NCBI RefSeq assembly: GCF_036321535.1
Contig: NC_087472.1
Location: forward strand, 2,170,001-2,233,859
DNA: 63,859 bases
Reading direction: 5' to 3'
From: Camelus dromedarius
Taxonomy: Eukaryota
In this document: positions 1-63,859 of the stretch, in pieces
How the letters are laid out: each line of letters begins with the position of its first letter
Position numbering within the stretch: the first letter of the stretch is position 1
Translations under genes and position numbers: made by a program
Notes under the pieces: model-generated
What the model saw: only the letters and a program-made list of their open reading frames with translations
Database searches by the model: none
Told to the model about the DNA's origin: nothing

Positions 1-528
1 CGCCTCTCTATCCTGTTCCATTGATCTGTGTGTCTGTTTGGGGGCCAGAACCGCACTGTTTTGATTACTACAGCTTTGTAGTATAGTCCAATGTCAGGGA
101 GCATGATTTCTCCAGCTCTGTTCTTCATTCCCAAGATTGTTTTAGCTATTGGGGTTCTTTTCTTTTTCCAGACACTTTTTTAAATTATTTGTTCTGGTTC
201 TGAGAAAAATGCCATTGTTATTTTGACAGGGATTGCTTTGAATCTGTAGATTGCCTTGGGTAGTATGGTCACTGGGTTGTTTGGTCAACAACACTGATTC
301 TTCCAATCCAAGAACACGGTATATCTTTCCATCTGTTGGTGTCATCTTCAGCTTCTTGCATCAGTGTCTTGTAGTTATTGGAGTACAGGTCTTTGGTCTC
401 CTTAGCTAGGTTTATTACTAGATTATTTATTCTCTTTGATGTGATGGTAAATGGGATTGTTTCCTTAATTTCTCTTTCTGATACTCCTTTGTTAGTGTAT
501 AAGATGCAACAGATTTCTGTATATTAAT
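1..528 (-). mobile_element. LINE-1 fragment (5'-truncated end; continues before the window)
   Basis: Same sequence as 6906-7433; antisense L1 ORF2 sequence ending ...gatttctgtatattaat. Confidence 0.9.
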
Positions 529-1210
529 AATAATATTAAATAAGCTTCAGTATCTTAGTTTGTGAATGATATTGATTATACACGTACTGGTACTTAGGCA
601 GCCCAAGACTGAGTTTTGCTATTTTGTAAAACAAATTGGGAAAGTTTCCATCATACTGTGTCATGCCAAAGTAGGTAACACCGCATCGGAATAGAAATTT
701 ACTTGGAAATGTGAGAGTGATCAGCACTAAAATCGGTGGGGTCAAGAAAGAGAGAAGTAAAAGTAAACGATAGGTAATTATTGGCTCCTTATCCCTTTTC
801 TTCTGTCAGTCTATAAAATTATAATTATGTGTGTATAACCTGGATTTGTCTGGCTTAGTTAAGAAAGTAGGAGAAAATCAACCTGGATCAGTAGGATCCC
901 TGCTCACCATCTCAGTTCATCCGCAGACGTTCACCGAGCCTCTCCTCTCTGGAGGGCTCGGTGTTAGCAGTGGGGACACTCGGAAAAGCAGGACAGCCCA
1001 CACCTAGGATAGTCTAGGAGCCGCAGTCACATCGGGAAGTTGGTGAAAGGTCTCCTAAGTCCCATAGGGCAAATAAAAATAGGGCGAGGGGGTGGGGGTC
1101 CGGGAGAGAGCACCCAAGTGTAAGTGCCCAGCGCCAGGGCAGTTCGGGGCTTTGGGAAGCTGGGGGGGAGGTCCTTCTGTGGGAGGTGATGGTAATGAAG
1201 CTGGGTGGTG
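529..1210 (+). other. Detached distal MAGE-A 3' UTR and 3' flank belonging to the upstream gene copy
   Basis: aagcttcagtatcttagtttgtgaatga, aattgggaaa, tacttggaaatgtga, cctggatttgtctggctt, gtctaggagccgcagtcac and gggctttgggaagctg resemble the recalled human MAGEA1 distal 3' UTR and flank, in the same order. Repeats at 7434, 14707, 21979, 29255, 36528, 43620, 50896, 58172. Confidence 0.7.
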
Positions 1211-1700
1211 GCGGCAGGCAGACGTGCAGACGGCGCTTGTTAGTGGTGAGAGGAACGTGTCAGGTGGGAGATTGCTCTGAGAAGTCCCTCTGGGATCGTG
1301 GATACATCTCCTGGGCGAGGGGGGAAGGTGTACTTTGTTCAGGGATGCTTAGAGACCTGGTTATCCTGCCTGAGCTGCTAGGACACTCAGAATGCTCCAA
1401 CTGCAGGGAGGAGTGGCGTTTGACGTGGCTCACAGTGTACTCCGTCCTGGCATATATAGTTGAAGAGGTTTGGTAACCGCCCCAAACTTGGGGTAGGATT
1501 TACTGGGGTGTGTTCTTGGAAACGGTCTGCTGGACACTTACACTGATGGGTCAGCTCCCCTCGATGGTCAGAATCCAAAGCCATAGATGAGGAATGGTCC
1601 TGGACATCGCAGGGAGGAAACACCCACCGAGGCTGAATTCCAAACAGGGAATCCACCTCCGGCCCTCCCGACAGCCCTGGGAGACCCCCGGGCACGGGGT

Positions 1701-1712
1701 CCGGATGTGACG
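1701..1712 (+). promoter_or_regulatory. ETS/half-CRE composite CCGGATGTGACG, MAGE-A-type core promoter element
   Basis: The same 12-mer is recalled from the human MAGEA1 promoter, whose CpG-containing ETS sites are methylation sensitive. Also at 8606, 15879, 23151, 30427, 37700, 44792, 52068, 59344. Confidence 0.65.
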
Positions 1713-2671
1713 GGCGCTGATGCCCCCTCCCTGGGGGGTGAGAGAGGTGAGGGCCTGGGTGAGGGAGGCCGGCTTCAGGTCTGCACAGGGAAGGAGCCCA
1801 GCGCTGCCAGGAGTCAAGGTAGAACCGTGTGGAGGGACTCGGGTTGCAGGGAATCCAGGTCGGTTCTGCTGTCAGCCCTGGGAGACCGCAGGCAGGGTTG
1901 CGGGGATCAGTGCCCCAACCCCCACCCCCGCTTCCCTCTCGGGGGTCCTGGCTGTGGAGGGGCCTGGGTCCAAGGGGAGCAAACTGAGGTGGGCAGAGGG
2001 AGGGGCCCAGGCCCAGCCTGGAGCCCAGGTGAGGAGCAGAGGGAAGGCTGAGGGACCCCCGGGGAATCCATCTCAGCGCCTGGCGTCCACAGTCCTGGGA
2101 AGCCCTGGGCTTGGTGGCCTGCTGTGAGTCCACAGACGCCCCTGGGGGTCTCTGGGCAGTGAGGGCCTTGGTGTGAAGGTGTGGGCTCGGCTCAACAAGG
2201 GGGCGTCCCAGGACCCGCCGGGGCTCAAGGTGAGGACCCTGACGGAGGACAGCATGGGCCCCACAGATCCCCGCCCCTGCTGTCAGCCCTGGGAGGGCCT
2301 GGGTGGGATGAGCACTCGTGGGGCCCTGACTTCCTCACACCCGGGTCTCCGAGGGACGGGGGTCCTGCGATGAGGGGCGGGGCCTCGGGTGGCCAGAGGC
2401 TAGACGACACGACGCCTAAGTGACGACCCTGAGGGAAAACTGAGGGGACCCCGAACCCGGAAAAGAGGCCATCCCACAGAAAGGGGCCCTTGCTATCAGC
2501 TGTCCGGAGGCCCGAGGGCAGGACAGGCCCCCGTGTTGTGTCGTGACTGCGGCACCCTGGTCTCACAGAGACCGGGGACTTCGTGTGAGATGAGGGGGGG
2601 ACCCTCAGATCTGCAGAGGAGAGAATCCCAGGTCCCACTGGGAGTGAAGGTGACGACCGCGAGCGAGCAGT

Positions 2672-4033: not shown

Positions 4034-4102
4034 GTTCACAGACGACCGTCCACCAGGAGGAGAGCCCCTGTGAGGCCGAGGGCACCCCTGAAGAGGAGAC
4101 CT
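4034..4102 (+). other. Non-coding penultimate exon (69 nt) of the MAGE-A gene
   Basis: Flanked by acceptor cttcccccgtcAG (4032-4033) and donor GTAAGT (4103). Matches the recalled MAGEA layout (...GAAGATCT|gtaagtag). Other copies: 11311-11379, 18584-18652, 25856-25924, 33132-33200, 40220-40288, 47497-47565, 54773-54841, 62050-62118. Confidence 0.85.
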
Positions 4103-4176: not shown

Positions 4177-4254
4177 GCCCGTGGGTCCCCATCTGTCACC
4201 CCTGCCCTCGCTGCTCTCAGCTGCCCGACACCACTCACCGTGCCTCCCGTTCAG

Positions 4255-5259
4255 ATGCGTGACCTCCACCACACTGAAGCCGACTTTCACGACCCAAGAG
4301 AGGCTGAGGATTCCGAGGATGAGCAGGACATTTGGGTTGAGGAGGAGGAGGGCGCATCCCCGTTGTCTCCCTCCTCCTCCTCCTCCTCCTCCTCCTCCTC
4401 CTTCTCCTCCTCGTCTTCCTACTCAGTCCTGTTCCTGGGCAGTGGCGAGGAGGTGGCTGATTCTGGGACACCCAGTCCCGCGCAGAGCCCTCAGGGTGTC
4501 TGCCCCTCCCCCACAGCCGTGGCAGCCCCTCCCTGGAGCCAGTCGGAAGACAATGGCCTCAGAAGCCAAGGTGAGGAGGGGCCCAGCACCGGGCAGGACC
4601 CGGCAGATGCCGAGTCCCGGCTCCACGATGCATTACATTTGATGATGGTTGACCTGATGGGCTTCCTGCTCCACAAGTACCGCACAAAGCAGCCGACCTC
4701 AAAAGAGGAAATGCTGAATGCGGTCCTCAGAGATGACCGGGACCACTTCCCTGCGGTCTTGAGCCAAGCCTCTGAGTGTCTGCAGCTGGTCTTTGGGGTG
4801 GATGTGAAGGAGGTGGACCCCAGGGAGCACTTGTATGTCCTGGTCCCCACCCTGGGCCTCACCTACGATGGCATGCAGGACGATGGGCAGAGCATTCCCA
4901 AGACTGGCCTCCTGCTGATACTTCTGGGTGTGATTGTCCTGGAGGGCGACTTTGCTCCTGAGGAGGCAGTCTGGGGAGCACTTAGCAAGATGGGGCTGTG
5001 TGCTGGGAGGGAGCACTTCATCTATGGGGAGCCCAGGGAGCTCATCACCAACGTGTGGGTGCGGGAGGGGTACGTGGAGTACCGGCAGGTGGCCAACAGC
5101 GATCCCGCTCGCCACGAGTTCCTGTGGGGTCCCCGGGCCTACACGGAGACCAGCAAGCTGCAAGTCCTGGAACATTTCCTCAGGATCAATAGAAGGGGTC
5201 CCAGTTCTTTCCCGTCCCTGTCTGAAGAGCGAGTGAGTGATGAGGAAGAGGGGGCCTGA
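4255..5259 (+). CDS. MAGEA: MAGE-A family protein (MAGE-A10-like), copy 1, 334 aa, single coding exon
   Basis: MAGE homology domain motifs DLMGFLLHKY, FPAVLSQASECLQLVFGVDVKEVDP, LGLTYDGM, PKTGLL, EHFIYGEPRELIT, VEYRQVANSDPARHEFLWGPRA, plus a Ser-rich/acidic N-terminus. First ATG of the coding exon is at 4255. The ORF-track start at 4114 is an intronic TTG. Exact orthologue not assignable. Confidence 0.95.
   Translation: MRDLHHTEADFHDPREAEDSEDEQDIWVEEEEGASPLSPSSSSSSSSSSFSSSSSYSVLFLGSGEEVADSGTPSPAQSPQGVCPSPTAVAAPPWSQSEDNGLRSQGEEGPSTGQDPADAESRLHDALHLMMVDLMGFLLHKYRTKQPTSKEEMLNAVLRDDRDHFPAVLSQASECLQLVFGVDVKEVDPREHLYVLVPTLGLTYDGMQDDGQSIPKTGLLLILLGVIVLEGDFAPEEAVWGALSKMGLCAGREHFIYGEPRELITNVWVREGYVEYRQVANSDPARHEFLWGPRAYTETSKLQVLEHFLRINRRGPSSFPSLSEERVSDEEEGA
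4372..4401 (+). repeat. Coding (TCC)n microsatellite, poly-Ser
   Basis: Ser codon run before TTC is 10, 8, 8, 10, 9, 9, 10, 10, 6 in copies 1-9. Confidence 0.97.
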
Positions 5260-5514: not shown

Positions 5515-7433
5515 TTTATTTTATTATACAGTCTTTTTAAAGATTACATTTTATTTACAGTTATGAGAAAATATTGGTTATATACCCCTTGTTCTGCAAT
5601 ACATTCTTGAACCTTCCTTACACCCAATAGTTTGTACTTCCCACTCCCTCACCCCTGTATTGCCCCTTGCCCCTCACCCCTCCCCACTGGTAATCACTAG
5701 TTTGTTCTCTATGAGCCTGCTTCTTCTTTGTTATACTCACTAGTTTGTTGTATTTTTTAGAGTCCACATATAAATTGATATCATACAGTATTTGTCTTTC
5801 TCTGTCTGATTTATTTCACTTAGCATAATGTCCTCCAAGTCCATCCATCTTGCTGNNNNNNNNNNNNNNNNNNNNNNNNNNNNNNNNNNNNNNNNNNNNN
5901 NNNNNNNNNNNNNNNNNNNNNNNNNNNNNNNNNNNNNNNNNNNNNNNNNNNNNNNNNNNNNNNNNNNNNNNNNNNNNNNNNNNNNNNNNNNNNNNTAGAT
6001 AACGCTGCTATGAATATTGGGTGCGTGTATCTTTTCAAATTAGTATCTGGTTTTTTTTTTTGTTTTTTTTTTTTTTTGAGATGTATACCCAGGAATGGAA
6101 TTGCTGGGTCACTTGGTAGTTCTAGTTTTAGTTTTTTGAGAAACGGCATACTGTTTTCCAGAGTGGTCACACCAATTTACATCCCCACCAACAGTGTAGG
6201 AGGGATCCCTTCTCTCCACATCTTCACCAACATTTGCTATTTGCNNNNNNNNNNNNNNNNNNNNNNNNNNNNNNNNNNNNNNNNNNNNNNNNNNNNNNNN
6301 NNNNNNNNNNNNNNNNNNNNNNNNNNNNNNNNNNNNNNNNNNNNNNNNNNNNNNNNNNNNNNNNNNNNNNNNCTTTGGACAAATGTCTATTGTGTTGTTC
6401 TGCCCGTTTTTAGTTGGGTCATTTGTTTTTTTGATGTTGAATTGTATGAGCTGTTTATATATGGTGGTTATTGCTCCCTTGTCAGTTGTAACGTTTGCAA
6501 ATATTTTCTCCCCTTCAGTAGGTTGTTGTTTTAATTTAGTCAGTGGGTTCCCTTGCTGTGCAGAAGCTTTTAAGTATAATTAGGTCCCCGCTGTTTATTT
6601 TTCCTTTTATTTCCTTTGTTTTTGGACATGGATCCAAAAAGTTATTGCTGTAATTTATGTCAGAGAGTGTTCTGCCTATGTTTTCCTCTAGGAGTATTAT
6701 AGTATCCAGTCTTAAATGTAGATCTTTAATCTATTTTGAGTTTATTTTTGTATATGGTGTTAGAGAATGTTCTAAGTTCATTGTTTGACAGGTAGCTGTC
6801 CAGTTTTCCCAGAGCCACTTATTGAAGAGACTGTCTTTTCTCCATTCAATATCCTTGCTTCCTTTGTCGTACATTAATTGACGGTAAGTGTGTGGGTTTA
6901 CTTCTCGCCTCTCTATCCTGTTCCATTGATCTGTGTGTCTGTTTGGGGGCCAGAACCGCACTGTTTTGATTACTACAGCTTTGTAGTATAGTCCAATGTC
7001 AGGGAGCATGATTTCTCCAGCTCTGTTCTTCATTCCCAAGATTGTTTTAGCTATTGGGGTTCTTTTCTTTTTCCAGACACTTTTTTAAATTATTTGTTCT
7101 GGTTCTGAGAAAAATGCCATTGTTATTTTGACAGGGATTGCTTTGAATCTGTAGATTGCCTTGGGTAGTATGGTCACTGGGTTGTTTGGTCAACAACACT
7201 GATTCTTCCAATCCAAGAACACGGTATATCTTTCCATCTGTTGGTGTCATCTTCAGCTTCTTGCATCAGTGTCTTGTAGTTATTGGAGTACAGGTCTTTG
7301 GTCTCCTTAGCTAGGTTTATTACTAGATTATTTATTCTCTTTGATGTGATGGTAAATGGGATTGTTTCCTTAATTTCTCTTTCTGATACTCCTTTGTTAG
7401 TGTGTAAGATGCAACAGATTTCTGTATATTAAT
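5515..7433 (-). mobile_element. 5'-truncated, degenerate LINE-1 (3' UTR plus ORF2 C-terminal part), antisense to MAGE-A
   Basis: Minus-strand remnants [15 protein letters not shown]...DQWNRIE...[13 protein letters not shown]...[10 protein letters not shown] and the Cys-rich [22 protein letters not shown]...LELPSDPAIPFLGI match L1 ORF2. Broken by stops and frameshifts. T-rich remnant tail near 5515. Confidence 0.93.
5856..6372. other. Two N blocks inside each L1 copy (5856-5995 and 6245-6372), probably masking rather than assembly gaps
   Basis: Same flanks in every unit. First block is 140/142/142/140/140/144/140/140 nt; second block is 128 nt wherever counted. Confidence 0.7.
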
Positions 7434-9576
7434 AATAATATTAAATAAGCTTCAGTATCTTAGTTTGTGAATGATATTGATTATACACGTACTGGTACTT
7501 AGGCAGCCCAAGACTGAGTTTTGCTATTTTGTAAAACAAATTGGGAAAGTTTCCATCATACTGTGTCATGCCAAAGTAGGTAACACCGCATCGGAATAGA
7601 AATTTACTTGGAAATGTGAGAGTGATCAGCACTAAAATCGGTGGGGTCAAGAAAGAGAGAAGTAAAAGTAAACGATAGGTAATTATTGGCTCCTTATCCC
7701 TTTTCTTCTGTCAGTCTATAAAATTATAATTATGTGTGTATAACCTGGATTTGTCTGGCTTAGTTAAGAAAGTAGGAGAAAATCAACCTGGATCAGTAGG
7801 ATCCCTGCTCACCATCTCAGTTCATCCGCAGACGTTCACCGAGCCTCTCCTCTCTGGAGGGCTCGGTGTTAGCAGTGGGGACACTCGGAAAAGCAGGACA
7901 GCCCACACCTAGGATAGTCTAGGAGCCGCAGTCACATCGGGAAGTTGGTGAAAGGTCTCCTAAGTCCCATAGGGCAAATAAAAATAGGGCGAGGGGGTGG
8001 GGGTCCGGGAGAGAGCACCCAAGTGTAAGTGCCCAGCGCCAGGGCAGTTCGGGGCTTTGGGAAGCTGGGGGGGAGGTCCTTCTGTGGGAGGTGATGGTAA
8101 TGAAGCTGGGTGGTGGCGGCAGGCAGACGTGCAGACGGCGCTTGTTAGTGGTGAGAGGAACGTGTCAGGTGGGAGATTGCTCTGAGAAGTCCCTCTGGGA
8201 TCGTGGATACATCTCCTGGGCGAGGGGGGAAGGTGTACTTTGTTCAGGGATGCTTAGAGACCTGGTTATCCTGCCTGAGCTGCTAGGACACTCAGAATGC
8301 TCCAACTGCAGGGAGGAGTGGCGTTTGACGTGGCTCACAGTGTACTCCGTCCTGGCATATATAGTTGAAGAGGTTTGGTAACCGCCCCAAACTTGGGGTA
8401 GGATTTACTGGGGTGTGTTCTTGGAAACGGTCTGCTGGACACTTACACTGATGGGTCAGCTCCCCTCGATGGTCAGAATCCAAAGCCATAGATGAGGAAT
8501 GGTCCTGGACATCGCAGGGAGGAAACACCCACCGAGGCTGAATTCCAAACAGGGAATCCACCTCCGGCCCTCCCGACAGCCCTGGGAGACCCCCGGGCAC
8601 GGGGTCCGGATGTGACGGGCGCTGATGCCCCCTCCCTGGGGGGTGAGAGAGGTGAGGGCCTGGGTGAGGGAGGCCGGCTTCAGGTCTGCACAGGGAAGGA
8701 GCCCAGCGCTGCCAGGAGTCAAGGTAGAACCGTGTGGAGGGACTCGGGTTGCAGGGAATCCAGGTCGGTTCTGCTGTCAGCCCTGGGAGACCGCAGGCAG
8801 GGTTGCGGGGATCAGTGCCCCAACCCCCACCCCCGCTTCCCTCTCGGGGGTCCTGGCTGTGGAGGGGCCTGGGTCCAAGGGGAGCAAACTGAGGTGGGCA
8901 GAGGGAGGGGCCCAGGCCCAGCCTGGAGCCCAGGTGAGGAGCAGAGGGAAGGCTGAGGGACCCCCGGGGAATCCATCTCAGCGCCTGGCGTCCACAGTCC
9001 TGGGAAGCCCTGGGCTTGGTGGCCTGCTGTGAGTCCACAGACGCCCCTGGGGGTCTCTGGGCAGTGAGGGCCTTGGTGTGAAGGTGTGGGCTCGGCTCAA
9101 CAAGGGGGCGTCCCAGGACCCGCCGGGGCTCAAGGTGAGGACCCTGACGGAGGACAGCATGGGCCCCACAGATCCCCGCCCCTGCTGTCAGCCCTGGGAG
9201 GGCCTGGGTGGGATGAGCACTCGTGGGGCCCTGACTTCCTCACACCCGGGTCTCCGAGGGACGGGGGTCCTGCGATGAGGGGCGGGGCCTCGGGTGGCCA
9301 GAGGCTAGACGACACGACGCCTAAGTGACGACCCTGAGGGAAAACTGAGGGGACCCCGAACCCGGAAAAGAGGCCATCCCACAGAAAGGGGCCCTTGCTA
9401 TCAGCTGTCCGGAGGCCCGAGGGCAGGACAGGCCCCCGAGTTGTGTCGTGACTGCGGCACCCTGGTCTCACAGAGACCGGGGACTTCGTGTGAGATGAGG
9501 GGGGGACCCTCAGATCTGCAGAGGAGAGAATCCCAGGTCCCACTGGGAGTGAAGGTGACGACCGCGAGCGAGCAGT

Positions 9577-10308
9577 GAGGGACCCTGGACCCCAAAACAC
9601 AGTCGGTCCTGGGAGGCCATAGGTCGGAATAAGCACCGGCGGCGTTTCCCGCCATCCGGGTCTCGGAGGGACTGGGGTCCTGGGATGAGGGGCGGGGCTT
9701 CGGGGGTTCCAAGGGGAGGCTACATGCCGCCTGAGTCAAAGTGAGGACCCCGAGGGAGAACGGAGGGACCCTGGACCCCAAAACACAGTCGGTCCTGGGA
9801 GGCCATAGGTCGGAATAAGCACCGGCGGCATTTCCCGCCATCCGGGTCTCGGAGGGACTGGGGTCCTGGGATGAGGGGCGGGGCTTCGGGGGTTCCAAGG
9901 GGAGGCTACATGCCGCCTGAGTCAAAGTGAGGACCCCGAGGGAGAACGGAGGGATCCTGGACCCCAAGACAGTGTTGGATCTTGGAGGCCTAGGGGCAGG
10001 GTGACCACCTGCGGCGTTTCCTGCCATCCGGGTCTCGGAGGGACTGGGGTCCTGGGATGAGGGGCGGGGCCTCGGGGGCTCCAAGGGGAGGCTATCTGCC
10101 GCCTGAGTCAAAGTGAGGACCCCGAGGGGGAACGGACGGATCTTGCACCCCGGGACAGTGTTGGACCTTGGAGGCCTTGGGGCAGGGTGACCACCTGCGG
10201 CGTTTCCTGCCATCCGGGTCTCGGAGGGACTGGGGTCATGGGATGAGGGGCGGGGCCTCGGGGGCTCCAAGGGGAGGCTACATGCCGCCTGAGTCAAAGT
10301 GAGGACCC
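9577..10308. repeat. 186-bp VNTR, unit 2, 4 copies (A,A,B,C)
   Basis: GT at 9741, 9927, 10113, 10299. Confidence 0.95.
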
Positions 10309-11531
10309 TCAAGCAGGAAGGAGGGGCCCCTGAACCCAGAAAAGTGGCCATCCCACAGAGAGTCGCCCTTGCTTTCAGCTGTCCGGCGGCCCGAGGGGAC
10401 GACAGCCCACGTGGTTTGTCCTGACTTCCGCATCCGAGTCTCAGACAGACCTGGGACATAGTGAAAGGGCGGGGGCCTCAGGTCTGCGGAGGAGAGAATC
10501 TCAGGGCCGCCTGGGAGTGAAGGTGACGACCGCGAGTTAGCATTCAGGGACCCTGGACCCCAAAACAGAGTCAGTCCTGGGAGGCCATGGGGCGGGAGGA
10601 CCTCGGGCAGCAGTTCCTGAAATGCGGGTCTCAGAGGGACTGGGGTCTTGGTATGACGGGCGGGGCCTCAGGTGGGCTGAGAGGGGAATCCCAGGTCCTG
10701 CCAGGAGTCAAGGTGACCCCGAGGGAGGAGTGAGGGACCCGAGATCCCAGAACAGAGGGGACGCAACCGATCCTGCCCCTGCTGTCAGCCCTGGGAGGCC
10801 TCAATGCGGGATGAGCACACGTGGTGTGTCCTGACTTCGGCATCCAGGGCTCAGAGAGACCGGGGACCTACTATCAGGATGGGGCCCTCAGGTGGTTGCA
10901 GAGCAGAATCCCAGGTCCCGCTTGGAGTCCCGGTGAGGACCCTGAGTTAGCGCGGACAGGACCTCCCACCCTAGAAGAGTGGGAACCTGCCAGAGCCCAG
11001 GCCTCCTGCCAGCACGCGGGTCCAGGGCTGTGCCACAGTGTAGATCCGAGGTCTCCCCTCCTTTCTCTCCCAGGGGCTCCAGACACCGGGAAGGCCTAGG
11101 TCTGAGACACGTGTTCTCGGGTCACAGAGCACAGGAGGCTGGCAGTGCCAGGACTGAAGGTGAGGTGTGGGCCCTGAGTGTGTACCCGGGGGCTCCCGGA
11201 ACAGAGGGGACCCCGCGAGGCCAACGTCCACTCCACACACCCCGTGTTGCCCCCAGAACCTCGGGCTGTGCCGGCTGCACCCTGAGGAGCCGCCTCACTT
11301 CCCCCGTCAGGTTCACAGACGACCGTCCACCAGGAGGAGAGCCCCTGTGAGGCCGAGGGCACCCCTGAAGAGGAGACCTGTAAGTAGCCTTTGTCAGAGC
11401 CCCCCACGGTGGGTTTCTCAGCCCGGGCCACTGACACTCCCTTTCTTCCCCAGGCCCGTGGGTCCCCATCTGTCACCCCTGCCCTCGCTGCTCTCAGCTG
11501 CCCGACACCACTCACCGTGCCTCCCGTTCAG

Positions 11532-12530
11532 ATGCGTGACCTCCACCACACTGAAGCCGACTTTCACGACCCAAGAGAGGCTGAGGATTCCGAGGATGAG
11601 CAGGACATTTGGGTTGAGGAGGAGGAGGGCGCATCCCCGTTGTCTCCCTCCTCCTCCTCCTCCTCCTCCTCCTTCTCCTCCTCGTCTTCCTACTCAGTCC
11701 TGTTCCTGGGCAGTGGCGAGGAGGTGGCTGATTCTGGGACACCCAGTCCCGCGCAGAGCCCTCAGGGTGTCTGCCCCTCCCCCACAGCCGTGGCAGCCCC
11801 TCCCTGGAGCCAGTCGGAAGACAATGGCCTCAGAAGCCAAGGTGAGGAGGGGCCCAGCACCGGGCAGGACCCGGCAGATGCCGAGTCCCGGCTCCACGAT
11901 GCATTACATTTGATGATGGTTGACCTGATGGGCTTCCTGCTCCACAAGTACCGCACAAAGCAGCCGACCTCAAAAGAGGAAATGCTGAATGCGGTCCTCA
12001 GAGATGACCGGGACCACTTCCCTGCGGTCTTGAGCCAAGCCTCTGAGTGTCTGCAGCTGGTCTTTGGGGTGGATGTGAAGGAGGTGGACCCCAGGGAGCA
12101 CTTGTATGTCCTGGTCCCCACCCTGGGCCTCACCTACGATGGCATGCAGGACGATGGGCAGAGCATTCCCAAGACTGGCCTCCTGCTGATACTTCTGGGT
12201 GTGATTGTCCTGGAGGGCGACTTTGCTCCTGAGGAGGCAGTCTGGGGAGCACTTAGCAAGATGGGGCTGTGTGCTGGGAGGGAGCACTTCATCTATGGGG
12301 AGCCCAGGGAGCTCATCACCAACGTGTGGGTGCGGGAGGGGTACGTGGAGTACCGGCAGGTGGCCAACAGCGATCCCGCTCGCCACGAGTTCCTGTGGGG
12401 TCCCCGGGCCTACACGGAGACCAGCAAGCTGCAAGTCCTGGAACATTTCCTCAGGATCAATAGAAGGGGTCCCAGTTCTTTCCCGTCCCTGTCTGAAGAG
12501 CGAGTGAGTGATGAGGAAGAGGGGGCCTGA
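11532..12530 (+). CDS. MAGEA: MAGE-A family protein, copy 2, 332 aa (8-Ser tract, DDRDH)
   Basis: Same protein as copy 1 except for poly-Ser length; intact frame. Confidence 0.95.
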   Translation: MRDLHHTEADFHDPREAEDSEDEQDIWVEEEEGASPLSPSSSSSSSSFSSSSSYSVLFLGSGEEVADSGTPSPAQSPQGVCPSPTAVAAPPWSQSEDNGLRSQGEEGPSTGQDPADAESRLHDALHLMMVDLMGFLLHKYRTKQPTSKEEMLNAVLRDDRDHFPAVLSQASECLQLVFGVDVKEVDPREHLYVLVPTLGLTYDGMQDDGQSIPKTGLLLILLGVIVLEGDFAPEEAVWGALSKMGLCAGREHFIYGEPRELITNVWVREGYVEYRQVANSDPARHEFLWGPRAYTETSKLQVLEHFLRINRRGPSSFPSLSEERVSDEEEGA

Positions 12531-12785
12531 GCCAGACTTGCAGCTGGGCTCCTTCTAGGCCCCTGTCCGGCAGCTTCTCCTGCCGGGCAGGAAGTGAGGC
12601 TGACTCTTCACTGTGTGTCTGAGGAGCAAGGAGTCAGCATCCTAAGTAGTGAGGGCCCGGGCCAGTGGGGGGGACACGGTGTACAGCATCTCTGGGCTCC
12701 TGTTCTCTACAATGATATGGAAGTTCATCTTCATTTCCTTTAGTGATGTTTCAGATGTTATTCGTTTTAATAAATATCAATATAC

Positions 12786-14706
12786 TTTATTTTATTATAC
12801 AGTCTTTTTAAAGATTACATTTTATTTACAGTTATGAGAAAATATTGGTTATATACCCCTTGTTCTGCAATACATTCTTGAACCTTCCTTACACCCAATA
12901 GTTTGTACTTCCCACTCCCTCACCCCTGTATTGCCCCTTGCCCCTCACCCCTCCCCACTGGTAATCACTAGTTTGTTCTCTATGAGCCTGCTTCTTCTTT
13001 GTTATACTCACTAGTTTGTTGTATTTTTTAGAGTCCACATATAAATTGATATCATACAGTATTTGTCTTTCTCTGTCTGATTTATTTCACTTAGCATAAT
13101 GTCCTCCAAGTCCATCCATCTTGCTGNNNNNNNNNNNNNNNNNNNNNNNNNNNNNNNNNNNNNNNNNNNNNNNNNNNNNNNNNNNNNNNNNNNNNNNNNN
13201 NNNNNNNNNNNNNNNNNNNNNNNNNNNNNNNNNNNNNNNNNNNNNNNNNNNNNNNNNNNNNNNNNNNNTAGATAACGCTGCTATGAATATTGGGTGCGTG
13301 TATCTTTTCAAATTAGTATCTGGTTTTTTTTTTTGTTTTTTTTTTTTTTTGAGATGTATACCCAGGAATGGAATTGCTGGGTCACTTGGTAGTTCTAGTT
13401 TTAGTTTTTTGAGAAACGGCATACTGTTTTCCAGAGTGGTCACACCAATTTACATCCCCACCAACAGTGTAGGAGGGATCCCTTCTCTCCACATCTTCAC
13501 CAACATTTGCTATTTGCNNNNNNNNNNNNNNNNNNNNNNNNNNNNNNNNNNNNNNNNNNNNNNNNNNNNNNNNNNNNNNNNNNNNNNNNNNNNNNNNNNN
13601 NNNNNNNNNNNNNNNNNNNNNNNNNNNNNNNNNNNNNNNNNNNNNCTTTGGACAAATGTCTATTGTGTTGTTCTGCCCGTTTTTAGTTGGGTCATTTGTT
13701 TTTTTGATGTTGAATTGTATGAGCTGTTTATATATGGTGGTTATTGCTCCCTTGTCAGTTGTAACGTTTGCAAATATTTTCTCCCCTTCAGTAGGTTGTT
13801 GTTTTAATTTAGTCAGTGGGTTCCCTTGCTGTGCAGAAGCTTTTAAGTATAATTAGGTCCCCGCTGTTTATTTTTCCTTTTATTTCCTTTGTTTTTGGAC
13901 ATGGATCCAAAAAGTTATTGCTGTAATTTATGTCAGAGAGTGTTCTGCCTATGTTTTCCTCTAGGAGTATTATAGTATCCAGTCTTAAATGTAGATCTTT
14001 AATCTATTTTGAGTTTATTTTTGTATATGGTGTTAGAGAATGTTCTAAGTTCATTGTTTGACAGGTAGCTGTCCAGTTTTCCCAGAGCCACTTATTGAAG
14101 AGACTGTCTTTTCTCCATTCAATATCCTTGCTTCCTTTGTCGTACATTAATTGACGGTAAGTGTGTGGGTTTACTTCTCGCCTCTCTATCCTGTTCCATT
14201 GATCTGTGTGTCTGTTTGGGGGCCAGAACCGCACTGTTTTGATTACTACAGCTTTGTAGTATAGTCCAATGTCAGGGAGCATGATTTCTCCAGCTCTGTT
14301 CTTCATTCCCAAGATTGTTTTAGCTATTGGGGTTCTTTTCTTTTTCCAGACACTTTTTTAAATTATTTGTTCTGGTTCTGAGAAAAATGCCATTGTTATT
14401 TTGACAGGGATTGCTTTGAATCTGTAGATTGCCTTGGGTAGTATGGTCACTGGGTTGTTTGGTCAACAACACTGATTCTTCCAATCCAAGAACACGGTAT
14501 ATCTTTCCATCTGTTGGTGTCATCTTCAGCTTCTTGCATCAGTGTCTTGTAGTTATTGGAGTACAGGTCTTTGGTCTCCTTAGCTAGGTTTATTACTAGA
14601 TTATTTATTCTCTTTGATGTGATGGTAAATGGGATTGTTTCCTTAATTTCTCTTTCTGATACTCCTTTGTTAGTGTGTAAGATGCAACAGATTTCTGTAT
14701 ATTAAT
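12786..14706 (-). mobile_element. LINE-1 remnant, copy after gene 2
   Basis: Near-identical to 5515-7433. Confidence 0.93.
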
Positions 14707-18804: not shown

Positions 18805-19803
18805 ATGCGTGACCTCCACCACACTGAAGCCGACTTTCACGACCCAAGAGAGGCTGAGGATTCCGAGGATGAGCAGGACATTTGGGTTGAGGAGGAGGAG
18901 GGCGCATCCCCGTTGTCTCCCTCCTCCTCCTCCTCCTCCTCCTCCTTCTCCTCCTCGTCTTCCTACTCAGTCCTGTTCCTGGGCAGTGGCGAGGAGGTGG
19001 CTGATTCTGGGACACCCAGTCCCGCGCAGAGCCCTCAGGGTGTCTGCCCCTCCCCCACAGCCGTGGCAGCCCCTCCCTGGAGCCAGTCGGAAGACAATGG
19101 CCTCAGAAGCCAAGGTGAGGAGGGGCCCAGCACCGGGCAGGACCCGGCAGATGCCGAGTCCCGGCTCCACGATGCATTACATTTGATGATGGTTGACCTG
19201 ATGGGCTTCCTGCTCCACAAGTACCGCACAAAGCAGCCGACCTCAAAAGAGGAAATGCTGAATGCGGTCCTCAGAGATGACCGGGACCACTTCCCTGCGG
19301 TCTTGAGCCAAGCCTCTGAGTGTCTGCAGCTGGTCTTTGGGGTGGATGTGAAGGAGGTGGACCCCAGGGAGCACTTGTATGTCCTGGTCCCCACCCTGGG
19401 CCTCACCTACGATGGCATGCAGGACGATGGGCAGAGCATTCCCAAGACTGGCCTCCTGCTGATACTTCTGGGTGTGATTGTCCTGGAGGGCGACTTTGCT
19501 CCTGAGGAGGCAGTCTGGGGAGCACTTAGCAAGATGGGGCTGTGTGCTGGGAGGGAGCACTTCATCTATGGGGAGCCCAGGGAGCTCATCACCAACGTGT
19601 GGGTGCGGGAGGGGTACGTGGAGTACCGGCAGGTGGCCAACAGCGATCCCGCTCGCCACGAGTTCCTGTGGGGTCCCCGGGCCTACACGGAGACCAGCAA
19701 GCTGCAAGTCCTGGAACATTTCCTCAGGATCAATAGAAGGGGTCCCAGTTCTTTCCCGTCCCTGTCTGAAGAGCGAGTGAGTGATGAGGAAGAGGGGGCC
19801 TGA
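18805..19803 (+). CDS. MAGEA: MAGE-A family protein, copy 3, 332 aa (8-Ser tract, DDRDH)
   Basis: Same translation as copy 2; intact frame. Confidence 0.95.
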   Translation: MRDLHHTEADFHDPREAEDSEDEQDIWVEEEEGASPLSPSSSSSSSSFSSSSSYSVLFLGSGEEVADSGTPSPAQSPQGVCPSPTAVAAPPWSQSEDNGLRSQGEEGPSTGQDPADAESRLHDALHLMMVDLMGFLLHKYRTKQPTSKEEMLNAVLRDDRDHFPAVLSQASECLQLVFGVDVKEVDPREHLYVLVPTLGLTYDGMQDDGQSIPKTGLLLILLGVIVLEGDFAPEEAVWGALSKMGLCAGREHFIYGEPRELITNVWVREGYVEYRQVANSDPARHEFLWGPRAYTETSKLQVLEHFLRINRRGPSSFPSLSEERVSDEEEGA

Positions 19804-40440: not shown

Positions 40441-41442
40441 ATGCGTGACCTCCACCACACTGAAGCCGACTTTCACGACCCAAGAGAGGCTGAGGATTCC
40501 GAGGATGAGCAGGACATTTGGGTTGAGGAGGAGGAGGGCGCATCCCCGTTGTCTCCCTCCTCCTCCTCCTCTTCCTCCTCCTCCTTCTCCTCCTCGTCTT
40601 CCTACTCAGTCCTGTTCCTGGGCAGTGGCGAGGAGGTGGCTGATTCTGGGACACCCAGTCCCGCGCAGAGCCCTCAGGGTGTCTGCCCCTCCCCCACAGC
40701 CGTGGCAGCCCCTCCCTGGAGCCAGTCGGAAGACAATGGCCTCAGAAGCCAAGGTGAGGAGGGGCCCAGCACCGGGCAGGACCCGGCAGATGCCGAGTCC
40801 CGGCTCCACGATGCATTACATTTGATGATGGTTGACCTGATGGGCTTCCTGCTCCACAAGTACCGCACAAAGCAGCCGACCTCAAAAGAGGAAATGCTGA
40901 ATGCGGTCCTCAGAGATGACCAGGACCACTTCCCTGCGGTCTTGAGCCAAGCCTCTGAGTGTCTGCAGCTGGTCTTTGGGGTGGATGTGAAGGAGGTGGA
41001 CCCCAGGGAGCACTTGTATGTCCTGGTCCCCACCCTGGGCCTCACCTACGATGGCATGCAGGACGATGGGCAGAGCATTCCCAAGACTGGCCTCCTGCTG
41101 ATACTTCTGGGTGTGATTGTCCTGGAGGGCGACTTTGCTCCTGAGGAGGCAGTCTGGGGAGCACTTAGCAAGATGGGGCTGTGTGCTGGGAGGGAGCACT
41201 TCATCTATGGGGAGCCCAGGGAGCTCATCACCAACGTGTGGGTGCGGGAGGGGTACGTGGAGTACCGGCAGGTGGCCAACAGCGATCCCGCTCGCCACGA
41301 GTTCCTGTGGGGTCCCCGGGCCTACACGGAGACCAGCAAGCTGCAAGTCCTGGAACATTTCCTCAGGATCAATAGAAGGGGTCCCAGTTCTTTCCCGTCC
41401 CTGTCTGAAGAGCGAGTGAGTGATGAGGAAGAGGGGGCCTGA
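40441..41442 (+). CDS. MAGEA: MAGE-A family protein, copy 6, 333 aa (9-Ser tract with TCT interruption, DDQDH)
   Basis: Intact frame. Confidence 0.95.
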   Translation: MRDLHHTEADFHDPREAEDSEDEQDIWVEEEEGASPLSPSSSSSSSSSFSSSSSYSVLFLGSGEEVADSGTPSPAQSPQGVCPSPTAVAAPPWSQSEDNGLRSQGEEGPSTGQDPADAESRLHDALHLMMVDLMGFLLHKYRTKQPTSKEEMLNAVLRDDQDHFPAVLSQASECLQLVFGVDVKEVDPREHLYVLVPTLGLTYDGMQDDGQSIPKTGLLLILLGVIVLEGDFAPEEAVWGALSKMGLCAGREHFIYGEPRELITNVWVREGYVEYRQVANSDPARHEFLWGPRAYTETSKLQVLEHFLRINRRGPSSFPSLSEERVSDEEEGA

Positions 41443-47717: not shown

Positions 47718-48722
47718 ATGCGTGACCTCCACCACACTGAAGCCGACTTTCACGACCCAAGAGAGGCTGAGGATTCCGAGGATGAGCAGGACATTTGGGT
47801 TGAGGAGGAGGAGGGCGCATCCCCGTTGTCTCCCTCCTCCTCCTCCTCCTCCTCCTCCTCCTCCTTCTCCTCCTCGTCTTCCTACTCAGTCCTGTTCCTG
47901 GGCAGTGGCGAGGAGGTGGCTGATTCTGGGACACCCAGTCCCGCGCAGAGCCCTCAGGGTGTCTGCCCCTCCCCCACAGCCGTGGCAGCCCCTCCCTGGA
48001 GCCAGTCGGAAGACAATGGCCTCAGAAGCCAAGGTGAGGAGGGGCCCAGCACCGGGCAGGACCCGGCAGATGCCGAGTCCCGGCTCCACGATGCATTACA
48101 TTTGATGATGGTTGACCTGATGGGCTTCCTGCTCCACAAGTACCGCACAAAGCAGCCGACCTCAAAAGAGGAAATGCTGAATGCGGTCCTCAGAGATGAC
48201 CAGGACCACTTCCCTGCGGTCTTGAGCCAAGCCTCTGAGTGTCTGCAGCTGGTCTTTGGGGTGGATGTGAAGGAGGTGGACCCCAGGGAGCACTTGTATG
48301 TCCTGGTCCCCACCCTGGGCCTCACCTACGATGGCATGCAGGACGATGGGCAGAGCATTCCCAAGACTGGCCTCCTGCTGATACTTCTGGGTGTGATTGT
48401 CCTGGAGGGCGACTTTGCTCCTGAGGAGGCAGTCTGGGGAGCACTTAGCAAGATGGGGCTGTGTGCTGGGAGGGAGCACTTCATCTATGGGGAGCCCAGG
48501 GAGCTCATCACCAACGTGTGGGTGCGGGAGGGGTACGTGGAGTACCGGCAGGTGGCCAACAGCGATCCCGCTCGCCACGAGTTCCTGTGGGGTCCCCGGG
48601 CCTACACGGAGACCAGCAAGCTGCAAGTCCTGGAACATTTCCTCAGGATCAATAGAAGGGGTCCCAGTTCTTTCCCGTCCCTGTCTGAAGAGCGAGTGAG
48701 TGATGAGGAAGAGGGGGCCTGA
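47718..48722 (+). CDS. MAGEA: MAGE-A family protein, copy 7, 334 aa (10-Ser tract, DDQDH)
   Basis: Intact frame. Confidence 0.95.
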   Translation: MRDLHHTEADFHDPREAEDSEDEQDIWVEEEEGASPLSPSSSSSSSSSSFSSSSSYSVLFLGSGEEVADSGTPSPAQSPQGVCPSPTAVAAPPWSQSEDNGLRSQGEEGPSTGQDPADAESRLHDALHLMMVDLMGFLLHKYRTKQPTSKEEMLNAVLRDDQDHFPAVLSQASECLQLVFGVDVKEVDPREHLYVLVPTLGLTYDGMQDDGQSIPKTGLLLILLGVIVLEGDFAPEEAVWGALSKMGLCAGREHFIYGEPRELITNVWVREGYVEYRQVANSDPARHEFLWGPRAYTETSKLQVLEHFLRINRRGPSSFPSLSEERVSDEEEGA

Positions 48723-54993: not shown

Positions 54994-55998
54994 ATGCGTG
55001 ACCTCCACCACACTGAAGCCGACTTTCACGACCCAAGAGAGGCTGAGGATTCCGAGGATGAGCAGGACATTTGGGTTGAGGAGGAGGAGGGCGCATCCCC
55101 GTTGTCTCCCTCCTCCTCCTCCTCCTCCTCCTCCTCCTCCTTCTCCTCCTCGTCTTCCTACTCAGTCCTGTTCCTGGGCAGTGGCGAGGAGGTGGCTGAT
55201 TCTGGGACACCCAGTCCCGCGCAGAGCCCTCAGGGTGTCTGCCCCTCCCCCACAGCCGTGGCAGCCCCTCCCTGGAGCCAGTCGGAAGACAATGGCCTCA
55301 GAAGCCAAGGTGAGGAGGGGCCCAGCACCGGGCAGGACCCGGCAGATGCCGAGTCCCGGCTCCACGATGCATTACATTTGATGATGGTTGACCTGATGGG
55401 CTTCCTGCTCCACAAGTACCGCACAAAGCAGCCGACCTCAAAAGAGGAAATGCTGAATGCGGTCCTCAGAGATGACCAGGACCACTTCCCTGCGGTCTTG
55501 AGCCAAGCCTCTGAGTGTCTGCAGCTGGTCTTTGGGGTGGATGTGAAGGAGGTGGACCCCAGGGAGCACTTGTATGTCCTGGTCCCCACCCTGGGCCTCA
55601 CCTACGATGGCATGCAGGACGATGGGCAGAGCATTCCCAAGACTGGCCTCCTGCTGATACTTCTGGGTGTGATTGTCCTGGAGGGCGACTTTGCTCCTGA
55701 GGAGGCAGTCTGGGGAGCACTTAGCAAGATGGGGCTGTGTGCTGGGAGGGAGCACTTCATCTATGGGGAGCCCAGGGAGCTCATCACCAACGTGTGGGTG
55801 CGGGAGGGGTACGTGGAGTACCGGCAGGTGGCCAACAGCGATCCCGCTCGCCACGAGTTCCTGTGGGGTCCCCGGGCCTACACGGAGACCAGCAAGCTGC
55901 AAGTCCTGGAACATTTCCTCAGGATCAATAGAAGGGGTCCCAGTTCTTTCCCGTCCCTGTCTGAAGAGCGAGTGAGTGATGAGGAAGAGGGGGCCTGA
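54994..55998 (+). CDS. MAGEA: MAGE-A family protein, copy 8, 334 aa (10-Ser tract, DDQDH)
   Basis: Intact frame. Confidence 0.95.
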   Translation: MRDLHHTEADFHDPREAEDSEDEQDIWVEEEEGASPLSPSSSSSSSSSSFSSSSSYSVLFLGSGEEVADSGTPSPAQSPQGVCPSPTAVAAPPWSQSEDNGLRSQGEEGPSTGQDPADAESRLHDALHLMMVDLMGFLLHKYRTKQPTSKEEMLNAVLRDDQDHFPAVLSQASECLQLVFGVDVKEVDPREHLYVLVPTLGLTYDGMQDDGQSIPKTGLLLILLGVIVLEGDFAPEEAVWGALSKMGLCAGREHFIYGEPRELITNVWVREGYVEYRQVANSDPARHEFLWGPRAYTETSKLQVLEHFLRINRRGPSSFPSLSEERVSDEEEGA

Positions 55999-61046: not shown

Positions 61047-62270
61047 TCAAGCAGGAAGGAGGGGCCCCTGAACCCAGAAAAGTGGCCATCCCACAGAGAG
61101 TCGCCCTTGCTTTAAGCTGTCCGGCGGCCCGAGGGGACGACAGGCCCATGTGGTTTTTCCTGACTTCCGCATTCGAGTCTCAGACAGAATGGAGACATAG
61201 TGAAAGGGAGGGGGCCTCAGGTCTGCGGAGGAGAGAATCTCAGGGCCGCCTGGAAGTGAAGGTGACAACCGCGAGTTTGCATTCAGGGACCCTGGACCCC
61301 AGAACAGAGTCAGTCCTGGGAGGCCATGGGGCGGGAGGACCTCGGGCAGCAGTTCCTGAAATGCGGGTCTCAGAGGGACTGGGGTCTTGGTATGACGGGC
61401 GGGGCCTCAGGTGGGCTGAGAGGGGAATCCCAGGTCCTGCCAGGAGTCAAGGTGACCCCGAGGGAGGAGTGAGGGACCCGAGATCCCAGAACAGAGGGGA
61501 CGCAACCGATCCTGCCCCTGCTGTCAGCCCTGGGAGGCCTCAATGCGGGATGAGCACACGTGGTGTGTTCTGACTTCGGCATCCAGGGCACAGAGAGACC
61601 GGGGACCTACTATCAGGATGGGGCCCTCAGGTGGTTGCAGAGCAGAATCCCAGGTCCCGCTTGGAGTCCCGGTGAGGACCCTGAGTTAGCGCGGACAGGA
61701 CCTCCCACCCTAGAAGAGTGGGAACCTGCCAGAGCCCAGGCCTCCTGCCAGCACGCGGGTCCAGGGCTGTGCCACAGTGTAGATCCGAGGTCTCCCCTCC
61801 TTTCTCTCCCAGGGGCTCCAGACACCGGGAAGGCCTAGGTCTGAGACACGTGTTCTCGGGTCACAGAGCACAGGAGGCTGGCAGTGCCAGGACTGAAGGT
61901 GAGGTGTGGGCCCTGAGTGTGTACCCGGGGGCTCCCGGAACAGAGGGGACCCCGCGAGGCCAACGTCCACTCAACACACCCCGTGTTGCCCCCAGAACCT
62001 CGGGCTGTGCCGGCTGCACCCTGAGGAGCCGCCTCACTTCCCCCGTCAGGTTCACAGACGACCGTCCACCAGGAGGAGAGCCCCTGTGAGGCCGAGGGCA
62101 CCCCTGAAGAGGAGACCTGTAAGTAGCCTTTGTCAGAGCCCCCCACGGTGGGTTTCTCAGCCCGGGCCACTGACACTCCCTTTCTTCCCCAGGCCCGTGG
62201 GTCCCCATCTGTCACCCCTGCCCTCGCTGCTCTCAGCTGCCCGACACCACTCACCGTGCCTCCCGTTCAG

Positions 62271-63263
62271 ATGCGTGACCTCCACCACACTGAAGCCGAC
62301 TTTCACGACCCAAGAGAGGCTGAGGATTCCGAGGATGAGCAGGACATTTGGGTTGAGGAGGAGGAGGGCGCATCCCCGTTGTCTCCCTCCTCCTCCTCCT
62401 CCTCCTTCTCCTCCTCGTCTTCCTACTCAGTCCTGTTCCTGGGCAGTGGCGAGGAGGTGGCTGATTCTGGGACACCCAGTCCCGCGCAGAGCCCTCAGGG
62501 TGTCTGCCCCTCCCCCACAGCCGTGGCAGCCCCTCCCTGGAGCCAGTCGGAAGACAATGGCCTCAGAAGCCAAGGTGAGGAGGGGCCCAGCACCGGGCAG
62601 GACCCGGCAGATGCCGAGTCCCGGCTCCACGATGCATTACATTTGATGATGGTTGACCTGATGGGCTTCCTGCTCCACAAGTACCGCACAAAGCAGCCGA
62701 CCTCAAAAGAGGAAATGCTGAATGCGGTCCTCAGAGATGACCAGGACCACTTCCCTGCGGTCTTGAGCCAAGCCTCTGAGTGTCTGCAGCTGGTCTTTGG
62801 GGTGGATGTGAAGGAGGTGGACCCCAGGGAGCACTTGTATGTCCTGGTCCCCACCCTGGGCCTCACCTACGATGGCATGCAGGACGATGGGCAGAGCATT
62901 CCCAAGACTGGCCTCCTGCTGATACTTCTGGGTGTGATTGTCCTGGAGGGCGACTTTGCTCCTGAGGAGGCAGTCTGGGGAGCACTTAGCAAGATGGGGC
63001 TGTGTGCTGGGAGGGAGCACTTCATCTATGGGGAGCCCAGGGAGCTCATCACCAACGTGTGGGTGCGGGAGGGGTACGTGGAGTACCGGCAGGTGGCCAA
63101 CAGCGATCCCGCTCGCCACGAGTTCCTGTGGGGTCCCCGGGCCTACACGGAGACCAGCAAGCTGCAAGTCCTGGAACATTTCCTCAGGATCAATAGAAGG
63201 GGTCCCAGTTCTTTCCCGTCCCTGTCTGAAGAGCGAGTGAGTGATGAGGAAGAGGGGGCCTGA
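62271..63263 (+). CDS. MAGEA: MAGE-A family protein, copy 9, 330 aa (6-Ser tract, DDQDH)
   Basis: Intact frame. Confidence 0.95.
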   Translation: MRDLHHTEADFHDPREAEDSEDEQDIWVEEEEGASPLSPSSSSSSFSSSSSYSVLFLGSGEEVADSGTPSPAQSPQGVCPSPTAVAAPPWSQSEDNGLRSQGEEGPSTGQDPADAESRLHDALHLMMVDLMGFLLHKYRTKQPTSKEEMLNAVLRDDQDHFPAVLSQASECLQLVFGVDVKEVDPREHLYVLVPTLGLTYDGMQDDGQSIPKTGLLLILLGVIVLEGDFAPEEAVWGALSKMGLCAGREHFIYGEPRELITNVWVREGYVEYRQVANSDPARHEFLWGPRAYTETSKLQVLEHFLRINRRGPSSFPSLSEERVSDEEEGA

Positions 63264-63518
63264 GCCAGACTTGCAGCTGGGCTCCTTCTAGGCCCCTGTC
63301 CGGCAGCTTCTCCTGCCGGGCAGGAAGTGAGGCTGACTCTTCACTGTGTGTCTGAGGAGCAAGGAGTCAGCATCCTAAGTAGTGAGGGCCCGGGCCAGTG
63401 GGGGGGACACGGTGTACAGCATCTCTGGGCTCCTGTTCTCTACAATGATATGGAAGTTCATCTTCATTTCCTTTAGTGATGTTTCAGATGTTATTCGTTT
63501 TAATAAATATCAATATAC

Positions 63519-63859
63519 TTTATTTTATTATACAGTCTTTTTAAAGATTACATTTTATTTACAGTTATGAGAAAATATCGGTTATATACGCCTTGTTCTG
63601 CAATACATTCTTGAACCTTCCTTACACCCAATAGTTTGTACTTCCCACTCCCTCACCCCTATATTGCCCCTTGCCCCTCACCCCTCCCCACTGGTAATCA
63701 CTAGTTTGTTCTCTATGAGCCTGCTTCTTCTTTGTTATACTCACTAGTTTGTTGTATTTTTTAGAGTCCACATATAAATTGATATCATACAGTATTTGTC
63801 TTTCTCTGTCTGATTTATTTCACTTAGCATAATGTCCTCCAAGTCCATCCATCTTGCTG
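63519..63859 (-). mobile_element. LINE-1 3' end, copy after gene 9 (cut by the window edge)
   Basis: Near-identical to 5515-5855. Confidence 0.9.

Follow-up and report, generated by a model that had tools for sequence, protein, structure and literature searches.

The stretch analysed here (the window; 63,859 nucleotides, nt) is part of a head-to-tail array of a MAGE-A8-like gene on the X chromosome of the dromedary, Camelus dromedarius. Exact-protein look-ups placed it at positions 2,170,001–2,233,859 of record CM070346.1 (GCA_036321535.1), the 114-Mb sequence of dromedary chromosome X (chrX). Spacing, anchoring and the same look-ups identify the whole window (1..63859, plus strand) as 8.8 units of a longer array, hereafter array 1; anchored on a unique word, it resolves into seven full and two partial units. 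Recurring 25-mers peak at spacings of 7,272–7,277 base pairs (bp), with minor peaks at 7,088–7,092 and 6,905 bp. With the phase set after the second of two runs of N that mark each unit, the representative full unit spans 6373..13645 on the plus strand and is followed by full units at 13646–20917, 20918–28193, 28194–35466, 35467–42558, 42559–49834 and 49835–57110; partial units occupy the window start (1–6372) and end (57111–63859). By the same unique-word anchor the full units measure 7273, 7272, 7276, 7273, 7092, 7276 and 7276 bp in order, the 7,092-bp unit having one internal cassette fewer than the others. Pairwise, they differ at 3–58 positions in ~7,000 aligned bases (0.04–0.85%, i.e., 99.1–99.96% identity), a similarity well outside what chance would give. 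The window contains neither a spacer unique to one site nor an inverted unit, and both of its edges cut through the array.

Each unit carries one MAGE open reading frame (ORF). When read from TTG to stop these ORFs comprise 377–381 codons, and all nine are open and lie on the plus strand. The ATG-started proteins are 330–334 amino acids (aa) long and alike but for the number of residues in a serine run and a single arginine/glutamine (R/Q) site. The R variant is encoded by the first three coding sequences (CDSs), at 4255..5259 (334 aa), 11532..12530 (332 aa) and 18805..19803 (332 aa), and the Q variant by the remaining six, at 26077..27081 (334 aa), 33353..34354 (333 aa), 40441..41442 (333 aa, in the most divergent unit of the window), 47718..48722 (334 aa), 54994..55998 (334 aa) and 62271..63263 (330 aa), all on the plus strand. 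In the second copy, Pfam recognizes both the MAGE domain (PF01454, E = 6e-15, residues 182–345 of the 379-aa ORF) and MAGE_N (PF12440, E = 2.4e-13). The top matches of a 332-aa copy are proteins named ‘melanoma-associated antigen 8-like’ from Camelus bactrianus (99% identity) and alpaca (88%), followed at 50–66% identity by proteins from many Laurasiatheria that carry MAGE-A names. Within the best 120 matches, the named proteins are without exception ‘melanoma-associated antigen 1/4/8/9/10/11(-like)’ or MAGEA13P, and by these best named matches the array gene is placed as a MAGE-A-type gene, that is, MAGE type I.

The CDS is uninterrupted and lies in a single predicted terminal exon, and the AG acceptor and GT donor motifs upstream of it are identical in 9/9 copies. 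In the representative unit, the predicted structure 5′ of the ATG consists of a 70-nt non-coding exon 2 (11311..11380, plus strand; acceptor cag/GTTCAC, donor CCTG/gtaagt; motifs identical in 9/9 copies), a 73-nt intron and the acceptor of the coding exon (ccccag/GCCCG). The predicted last exon (11454..12790, plus strand) includes the CDS at 11532–12530 and a 3′ untranslated region (UTR) with an AATAAA hexamer at 12769–12774. This poly(A) hexamer, 241 nt past the stop codon, reads AATAAA in five of the nine window copies and CATAAA in the other four, namely copies four, five, seven and eight (27320–27325, 34593–34598, 48961–48966 and 56237–56242, plus strand). Transcripts of the CATAAA copies may read through into the antisense L1 remnant that lies downstream.

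Upstream of the gene, Tandem Repeats Finder (TRF) detects an internal tandem repeat of 186 bp in ~4 copies per unit. These cassettes make up a GC-rich region of presumed regulatory function (9187..10757, plus strand), in which four full cassettes (9547–10290) are flanked on both sides by partial ones (9187–9322, 10515–10672 and 10705–10757), all on the plus strand. As every cassette terminates in a GT donor-like site, the cassettes are presumed to be promoter/first-exon modules. The human MAGE-A4 gene has alternative first exons. The observed/expected ratio of CpG is 0.4–0.6 over the 3.5 kb of GC-rich sequence. Cassette number differs between units (e.g., at window positions 2672–3031 and 38641–39216), and a change by one cassette explains the length of the 7,092-bp unit. 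Over the whole of array 1, CDS spacing falls into four classes (~6,900, 7,090, 7,275 and 7,450 bp), which suggests units with 2 to 5 cassettes. A 352-aa ORF running through the cassettes (window 9401–10459, minus strand, and its equivalents) is most likely no gene, its periodic sequence being made by the repeat. An Rfam scan of 6373–13126 was blank. The GC-rich minus-strand ORFs, including this one, gave no Pfam match and the GC-rich region diverges at the neutral rate, so that the unit appears to hold no second gene.

The stretch from the 3′UTR to the GC-rich region of the next unit is filled by an antisense, 5′-truncated L1 remnant with pieces of the ORF2 C terminus (approximately 12880..14700, minus strand), which is found in the alpaca unit as well. 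Within this remnant lie the runs of N, 16 in the window, of which each unit has one of 140–144 and one of 128 at constant phase. The first type is represented by 142 Ns at 13127..13268, with equivalents at 5856–5995, 20400–20541, 27678–27817, 34951–35090, 42039–42182, 49319–49458 and 56595–56734; the second by 128 Ns at 13518..13645, with equivalents at 6245–6372, 20790–20917, 28066–28193, 35339–35466, 42431–42558, 49707–49834 and 56983–57110. The unit period holds when the Ns are counted, alpaca has ~137 and ~134 letters between the matching anchors (by alignment coordinates only), and the open frame of the antisense L1 ORF2 on one side of the first run continues in register on the other. For these reasons, the N runs are one-for-one masks of real sequence and not gaps. 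The neighbouring loci of this genome are unmasked and entered the analysis through coordinates and through regions outside the masks. They start at least 596 bp past the stop codon and leave the MAGE gene untouched.

Beyond the window, array 1 comprises 17 copies on the plus strand, with CDS starts from 2,145,739 to 2,261,339 on CM070346.1. Its first unit begins at unit position 2181 (locus coordinate L003:7020), and its last unit is partial and stops at unit position 1748 (L014:13862). A second array, array 2, holds 8 copies sharing the ATG word on the minus strand, at 2,474,010–2,524,700 (region read 2,463,012–2,534,700; loci L015–L021), and its first unit likewise begins at unit position 2181. 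This position, which corresponds to window 23098 in unit 3, places the true duplication junction at approximately 8553 (plus strand) within the representative unit. The outer flanks of the two arrays match over 4.56 kb at 98.97% and then cease to match. Given the same start of the first unit and the common outer flank, arrays 1 and 2 are, as judged from their sequences, inverted duplicates facing each other across ~200 kb. At its inner end, array 2 passes into a diverged MAGE copy, and this inner-end structure is repeated at 98.7%, diverged MAGE paralogue included, around a solo copy at ~3,140,300 (locus L022), ~0.6 Mb beyond the nearer array. The region thus contains 26 copies (17 + 8 + 1), all with open ORFs of 330–334 aa, which encode seven distinct proteins and have two variable sites besides the serine run.

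These observations bear on a preliminary description of the window, which had proposed a homogeneous head-to-tail array of a MAGE-A gene with at least nine direct repeats of ~7.27 kb, extending past both edges. K-mer spacing, anchoring and the pairwise differences of 0.04–0.85% bear out the repeats, the neighbouring record sequence does carry more units, and the MAGE-A assignment agrees with the two Pfam domains and the MAGE-A-type names in the best 120 matches. Every copy is open, as had been proposed, in the window (9/9) and in the region (26/26). The statement that inversions and unique spacers are lacking holds inside the window but not beyond it, where the inverted eight-copy array lies ~200 kb away. 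Likewise, the description of each unit as a complete gene is right for the open CDS and the splice motifs (9/9) but has to be qualified for the poly(A) hexamer, which is CATAAA in 4/9 copies.

The age of the array can be assessed by comparison with alpaca, in which scaffold JBLVOU010000200.1 carries the same gene with a period of 7,308–7,312 bp. The dromedary unit is collinear with the alpaca units over its full 7.27 kb, including the L1 remnant and the junction at position 2181, and identity reaches 93–95% along most of its length and drops in the cassettes and in the short piece that separates the two masks. The alpaca array opens, at its outer edge, at the same nucleotide (±1) of the unit as the dromedary arrays and adjoins a 91-bp non-unit flank that is common to both species (91% identity), beyond which the flanks differ. 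Because junction and array boundary are common to camel and alpaca, the comparison shows that the array goes back to one tandem duplication event that preceded the divergence of Old from New World camelids, which is estimated at 11–25 million years ago (Mya; PMC4884201). The RefSeq annotation also contains many models of the gene in C. bactrianus and on two alpaca contigs, although where a protein has several accessions these may be isoforms.

In a unit tree built from 26 dromedary and 4 alpaca units, each species forms one clade with a Shimodaira–Hasegawa-like approximate likelihood ratio test (SH-aLRT) support of 100 and a stem of 0.028 changes per site per clade. For this tree, positions equivalent to window 12268–12321 were cut by a fixed offset, a cut that is exact only for the 332-aa copies. 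Terminal branches within species are mostly below 0.004 changes per site, and the stem value compares with less than 0.02 within dromedary. Array 2 is mostly a single clade nested inside the diversity of array 1. Basal positions are taken by the solo copy and by the units at the outer ends of both arrays, as rarer exchange at array ends would predict. Since the structure is shared across species while the units cluster by species, the units evolve in concert, and their high identity stems from this concerted evolution. Assuming a clock, no conversion and scaling to an interspecies divergence of 5%, the deepest pair in the window (0.85%) would date to ~2–4 million years (My), the closest pairs (0.04–0.06%) to ~0.1–0.3 My and the flanks of arrays 1 and 2 (1.03%) to ~2–5 My.

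The preliminary description had interpreted the array as a recent lineage-specific amplification and had suggested synteny and phylogeny against related species as a check. The collinear alpaca array with its boundary at ±1 nt and the species clades with an SH-aLRT of 100 give a divided answer. At the level of species or genus the interpretation is not tenable, as alpaca has the unit, the junction and the boundary; at the level of the family, Camelidae, lineage specificity stands. An array shared with relatives had been named as evidence against the idea, and with the alpaca array the proposed recent origin fails.

Divergence between camel and alpaca varies along the unit, with 5.1% in the L1 remnant, 4.8% in the GC-rich upstream sequence, 5.2% from the cassettes to exon 2, 2.7% in exon 2, intron and 5′UTR, 2.8% in the CDS and 6.9% in the 3′UTR. 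Codon counts, which exclude 18 codons (window 12268–12321), give a nonsynonymous rate (dN) of 0.029 and a synonymous rate (dS) of 0.028 for the CDS, i.e., a ratio (ω) of ~1.0 from 20 nonsynonymous (N) and 6 synonymous (S) changes. The dN is ~0.6 of the neutral rate in the flanks. The two CDS indels between the species (48 and 24 nt) are both in frame, and 13/16 flank indels outside the cassette array are not. From the flank indel rate and the share of stop-creating substitutions, the probability that the ORF would stay open under neutrality is ~0.013, and all 30 ORFs read in dromedary and alpaca are open. Because a neutral ORF would so rarely persist, the retention of coding capacity by selection is supported statistically, while the protein sequence either changes freely or is driven to change. 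A McDonald–Kreitman-like contrast was considered and discarded, as the 15 ‘segregating’ CDS sites of the DNA alignment are a misalignment of the serine run. In the codon alignment, 2 N : 1 S in dromedary and 3 N : 0 S in alpaca stand against 19 N : 6 S fixed differences, without contrast.

Homogenization is uneven along the unit. Among the 26 dromedary copies, segregating sites reach 7–9.5 per 100 bp at −1300 to −700 from the ATG, fall to 0–2 per 100 bp from ~−500 to the stop codon (e.g., 11030–12530) and rise to 4–4.5 per 100 bp directly past the stop codon; a cluster at 792–802 in this profile is an artefact of the alignment cut. The last intron and the CDS are therefore about ten times less variable than the flanks, synonymous sites included. 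Of 918 sites in the codon alignment, 3 vary (2 N, 1 S), compared with 20/578 in the 3′ flank (P = 2e-6). Synonymous variants in the CDS number one where 7.4 are expected (P = 0.005), and, measured against the divergence between species, the CDS varies less within the array than the flanks do (P = 7e-4). Homogenization is thus strongest over the last intron and the CDS. As selection at the protein level alone leaves the low synonymous variation unexplained, we invoke either conversion that strikes the coding exon more often or one CDS that recently swept both arrays and the solo copy. A more far-reaching and speculative idea, which we regard as doubtful, is that selection has kept the macrosatellite in both camelid lineages for over 11 My, with homogenization centred on the coding exon, and acts as one evolving ‘super-gene’. 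If this were true, new protein variants would sweep all copies, in both inverted arrays and even in the solo copy ~0.6 Mb away, and a role in germline stress protection or X-linked drive would be implied.

Overall, the observations are best explained by a real X-linked ampliconic MAGE-A array of the camel family that is old, evolves in concert and has its ORF under selection, an explanation to which we assign a probability of roughly three in four. The 7.3-kb unit consists of a GC-rich region with the presumed promoter cassettes, a short predicted non-coding exon, the exon with the MAGE-A CDS, the 3′UTR and the antisense L1 remnant. It was duplicated in tandem once, before the camelid split, and the copies would then have been kept uniform by copy-correction in each lineage. 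The payoff would likely be a high dose of a single MAGE-A protein in male germ cells. Mage-a genes shield spermatogonia under stress and MAGE proteins are adaptors of RING E3 ubiquitin ligases (PMC6541465); a dosage function in germ cells is suggested by membership in this family.

An assembler could in principle have multiplied a locus of one or few real copies, as repeats of 7 kb with hardly any differences are a challenge to assembly, and among the annotated models of array 2 one is called partial (289 aa). However, the units are separated by specific single-nucleotide polymorphisms (SNPs), serine-run lengths and cassette numbers and form supported subclades, the same unit and period recur in the independent alpaca assembly, multi-copy models exist in C. 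bactrianus, and the basal position of the edge units is what unequal exchange predicts and speaks against an assembler's duplicate. With structured variants, length differences of whole cassettes, the same period in alpaca and multi-copy RefSeq models, an assembly artefact is unlikely, and over-expansion from one or few copies is very improbable. In DNA-type sequencing runs, taken as contigs (several studies of one organism and one run of a second), 0.88–0.89 of the sampled words were present; RNA-seq contig sets from two studies, one of them labelled ‘reproductive system metagenome’, had 0.60–0.66, a share in which DNA carry-over is possible. Still less credible is a recent amplification from a single copy within the species or genus, with camel and alpaca arrays arising independently. 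The within-species identity of 99.1–99.96% and the strict clustering of units by species would fit such an origin, and part of the present copy number may be due to recent expansion, but independent duplications would not share the internal junction, the start of the first unit (±1 nt), the 91-bp flank and the L1 remnant, and the interspecies divergence of the units (~5%) equals the neutral divergence of orthologous sequence.

Two further alternatives accept the array as real and concern its value to the animal. It may be old but neutral, maintained by unequal crossing-over only, with dosage unselected and one working copy sufficing. The dN/dS of ~1, the weakened poly(A) hexamer in 4/9 copies, the drift of cassette number between units and the non-independence of the intact copies agree with neutrality; a valueless array would nevertheless be expected to collapse or decay over 11–25 My, and both lineages keep many copies with 30/30 ORFs open, a retention that has P ~0.013 under neutrality. 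On balance we consider the neutral explanation unlikely, though it deserves to be taken seriously. Alternatively, what drove the amplification of the X-linked array may have been an arms race against a partner on the Y or an autosome, comparable to Slx/Sly in mouse, and not simple dosage. An X-linked, multi-copy family of germline type, in arrays and inverted arrays, fits such a conflict, and a dN/dS of ~1 is compatible with recurrent adaptive change. Yet no Y-linked or other co-amplified partner turned up, although no search for one was made, and the fixed and paralogous N : S counts (19:6 versus 2:1 and 3:0) lack a contrast of the McDonald–Kreitman type, which leaves sex-chromosome conflict improbable. 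Several points also weigh against the explanation that we prefer, the old, selected array of the camel family. The alpaca array was read on an unplaced scaffold whose outer flank differs beyond 91 bp, so that positional orthology is shown at the boundary only. The 26 intact copies are recent descendants of one another and not 26 independent observations, and exact copy counts rest on one assembly per species. Splicing, promoter use and expression of the MAGE units are predicted only, CATAAA replaces AATAAA in four window copies, and a dN/dS of ~1.0 means that constraint at the protein level is weak or mixed with positive selection.

Directly outside the edge of the alpaca array lies a Cor1/Xlr/SYCP3-like gene (PF04803; JBLVOU010000200.1, L001:291–5979), which has no counterpart beside the dromedary arrays that were read; the alpaca flank on this side gave no match to the dromedary array flanks read except for pieces resembling transposable elements. 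In dromedary, a PNMA6A/6B-like gene is located ~4 kb past the end of array 1 (L014:17907–19286, minus strand; CM070346.1 ~2,269,245–2,270,624). It has an in-frame TGA between the PNMA_N and PNMA domains, yet its annotation gives a product of 459 aa. Its matches included no orthologue from Bactrian camel or alpaca, and the gene may be a camelid pseudogene or contain a recoded stop. The 10 kb to each side of dog PNMA6 lack MAGE-like sequence, which is uninformative on an ancestral position past 10 kb.

The camelid array is a new X-linked ampliconic array of cancer-testis type. It resembles the human GAGE, CT47, CT45 and SPANX arrays, which are likewise X-linked and consist of kb-scale head-to-tail whole-gene units with >99% identity. 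It differs from them in being built from another gene family, in the persistence of unit and junction over 11–25 My in concert and in being itself duplicated in inverted orientation; testis expression and copy-number polymorphism are putative for the camelid array. The gene-bearing macrosatellites D4Z4/DUX4 and TSPY are also long-lived, with units that evolve in concert and retain an open ORF. Their genes are unrelated, they reside on a subtelomeric autosomal site and on the Y chromosome, respectively, and their copy-number polymorphism is documented.

Primate MAGE-A genes at Xq28 are diverged paralogues arranged in 10–20-kb units and palindromes with gene conversion (Katsura & Satta 2011, PMC3112145), and selection acts against the homogenization of part of the CDS, with a dN/dS of 0.9 for MAGE-A3/A6 (PMC3112145). 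The camelid array shares with this cluster the subfamily, as placed by best named matches, the CDS in one terminal exon, an inverted duplication and a dN/dS near 1. In contrast to the primate cluster, it consists of one paralogue in a homogeneous tandem array, and the CDS is its most uniform part. The mouse Mage-a cluster (Fon Tacer et al. 2019, PMC6541465) is similarly an X-linked multigene cluster, and the functional model derived from it applies to camelids by family membership only. X-linked ampliconic gene families are widespread and their content varies between mammalian lineages (PMC8327908, PMC13616518). Our literature search found no paper on a camelid MAGE array, and camelids are not part of PMC8327908.

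With these findings, camelids join the mammals that have an X-linked ampliconic cancer-testis family specific to their lineage, and MAGE-A, usually present as diverged paralogues, is seen organized as a homogeneous tandem array. For practical purposes, short-read variant calls in the array region are unreliable. The unit and boundary common to camel and alpaca provide a natural experiment dated to 11–25 My on the persistence of macrosatellites, the rate of homogenization and its focus on the coding exon. Male fertility in camels and alpacas may moreover be influenced by copy number at this locus, with its ~25 near-identical copies of a germline-type MAGE gene.

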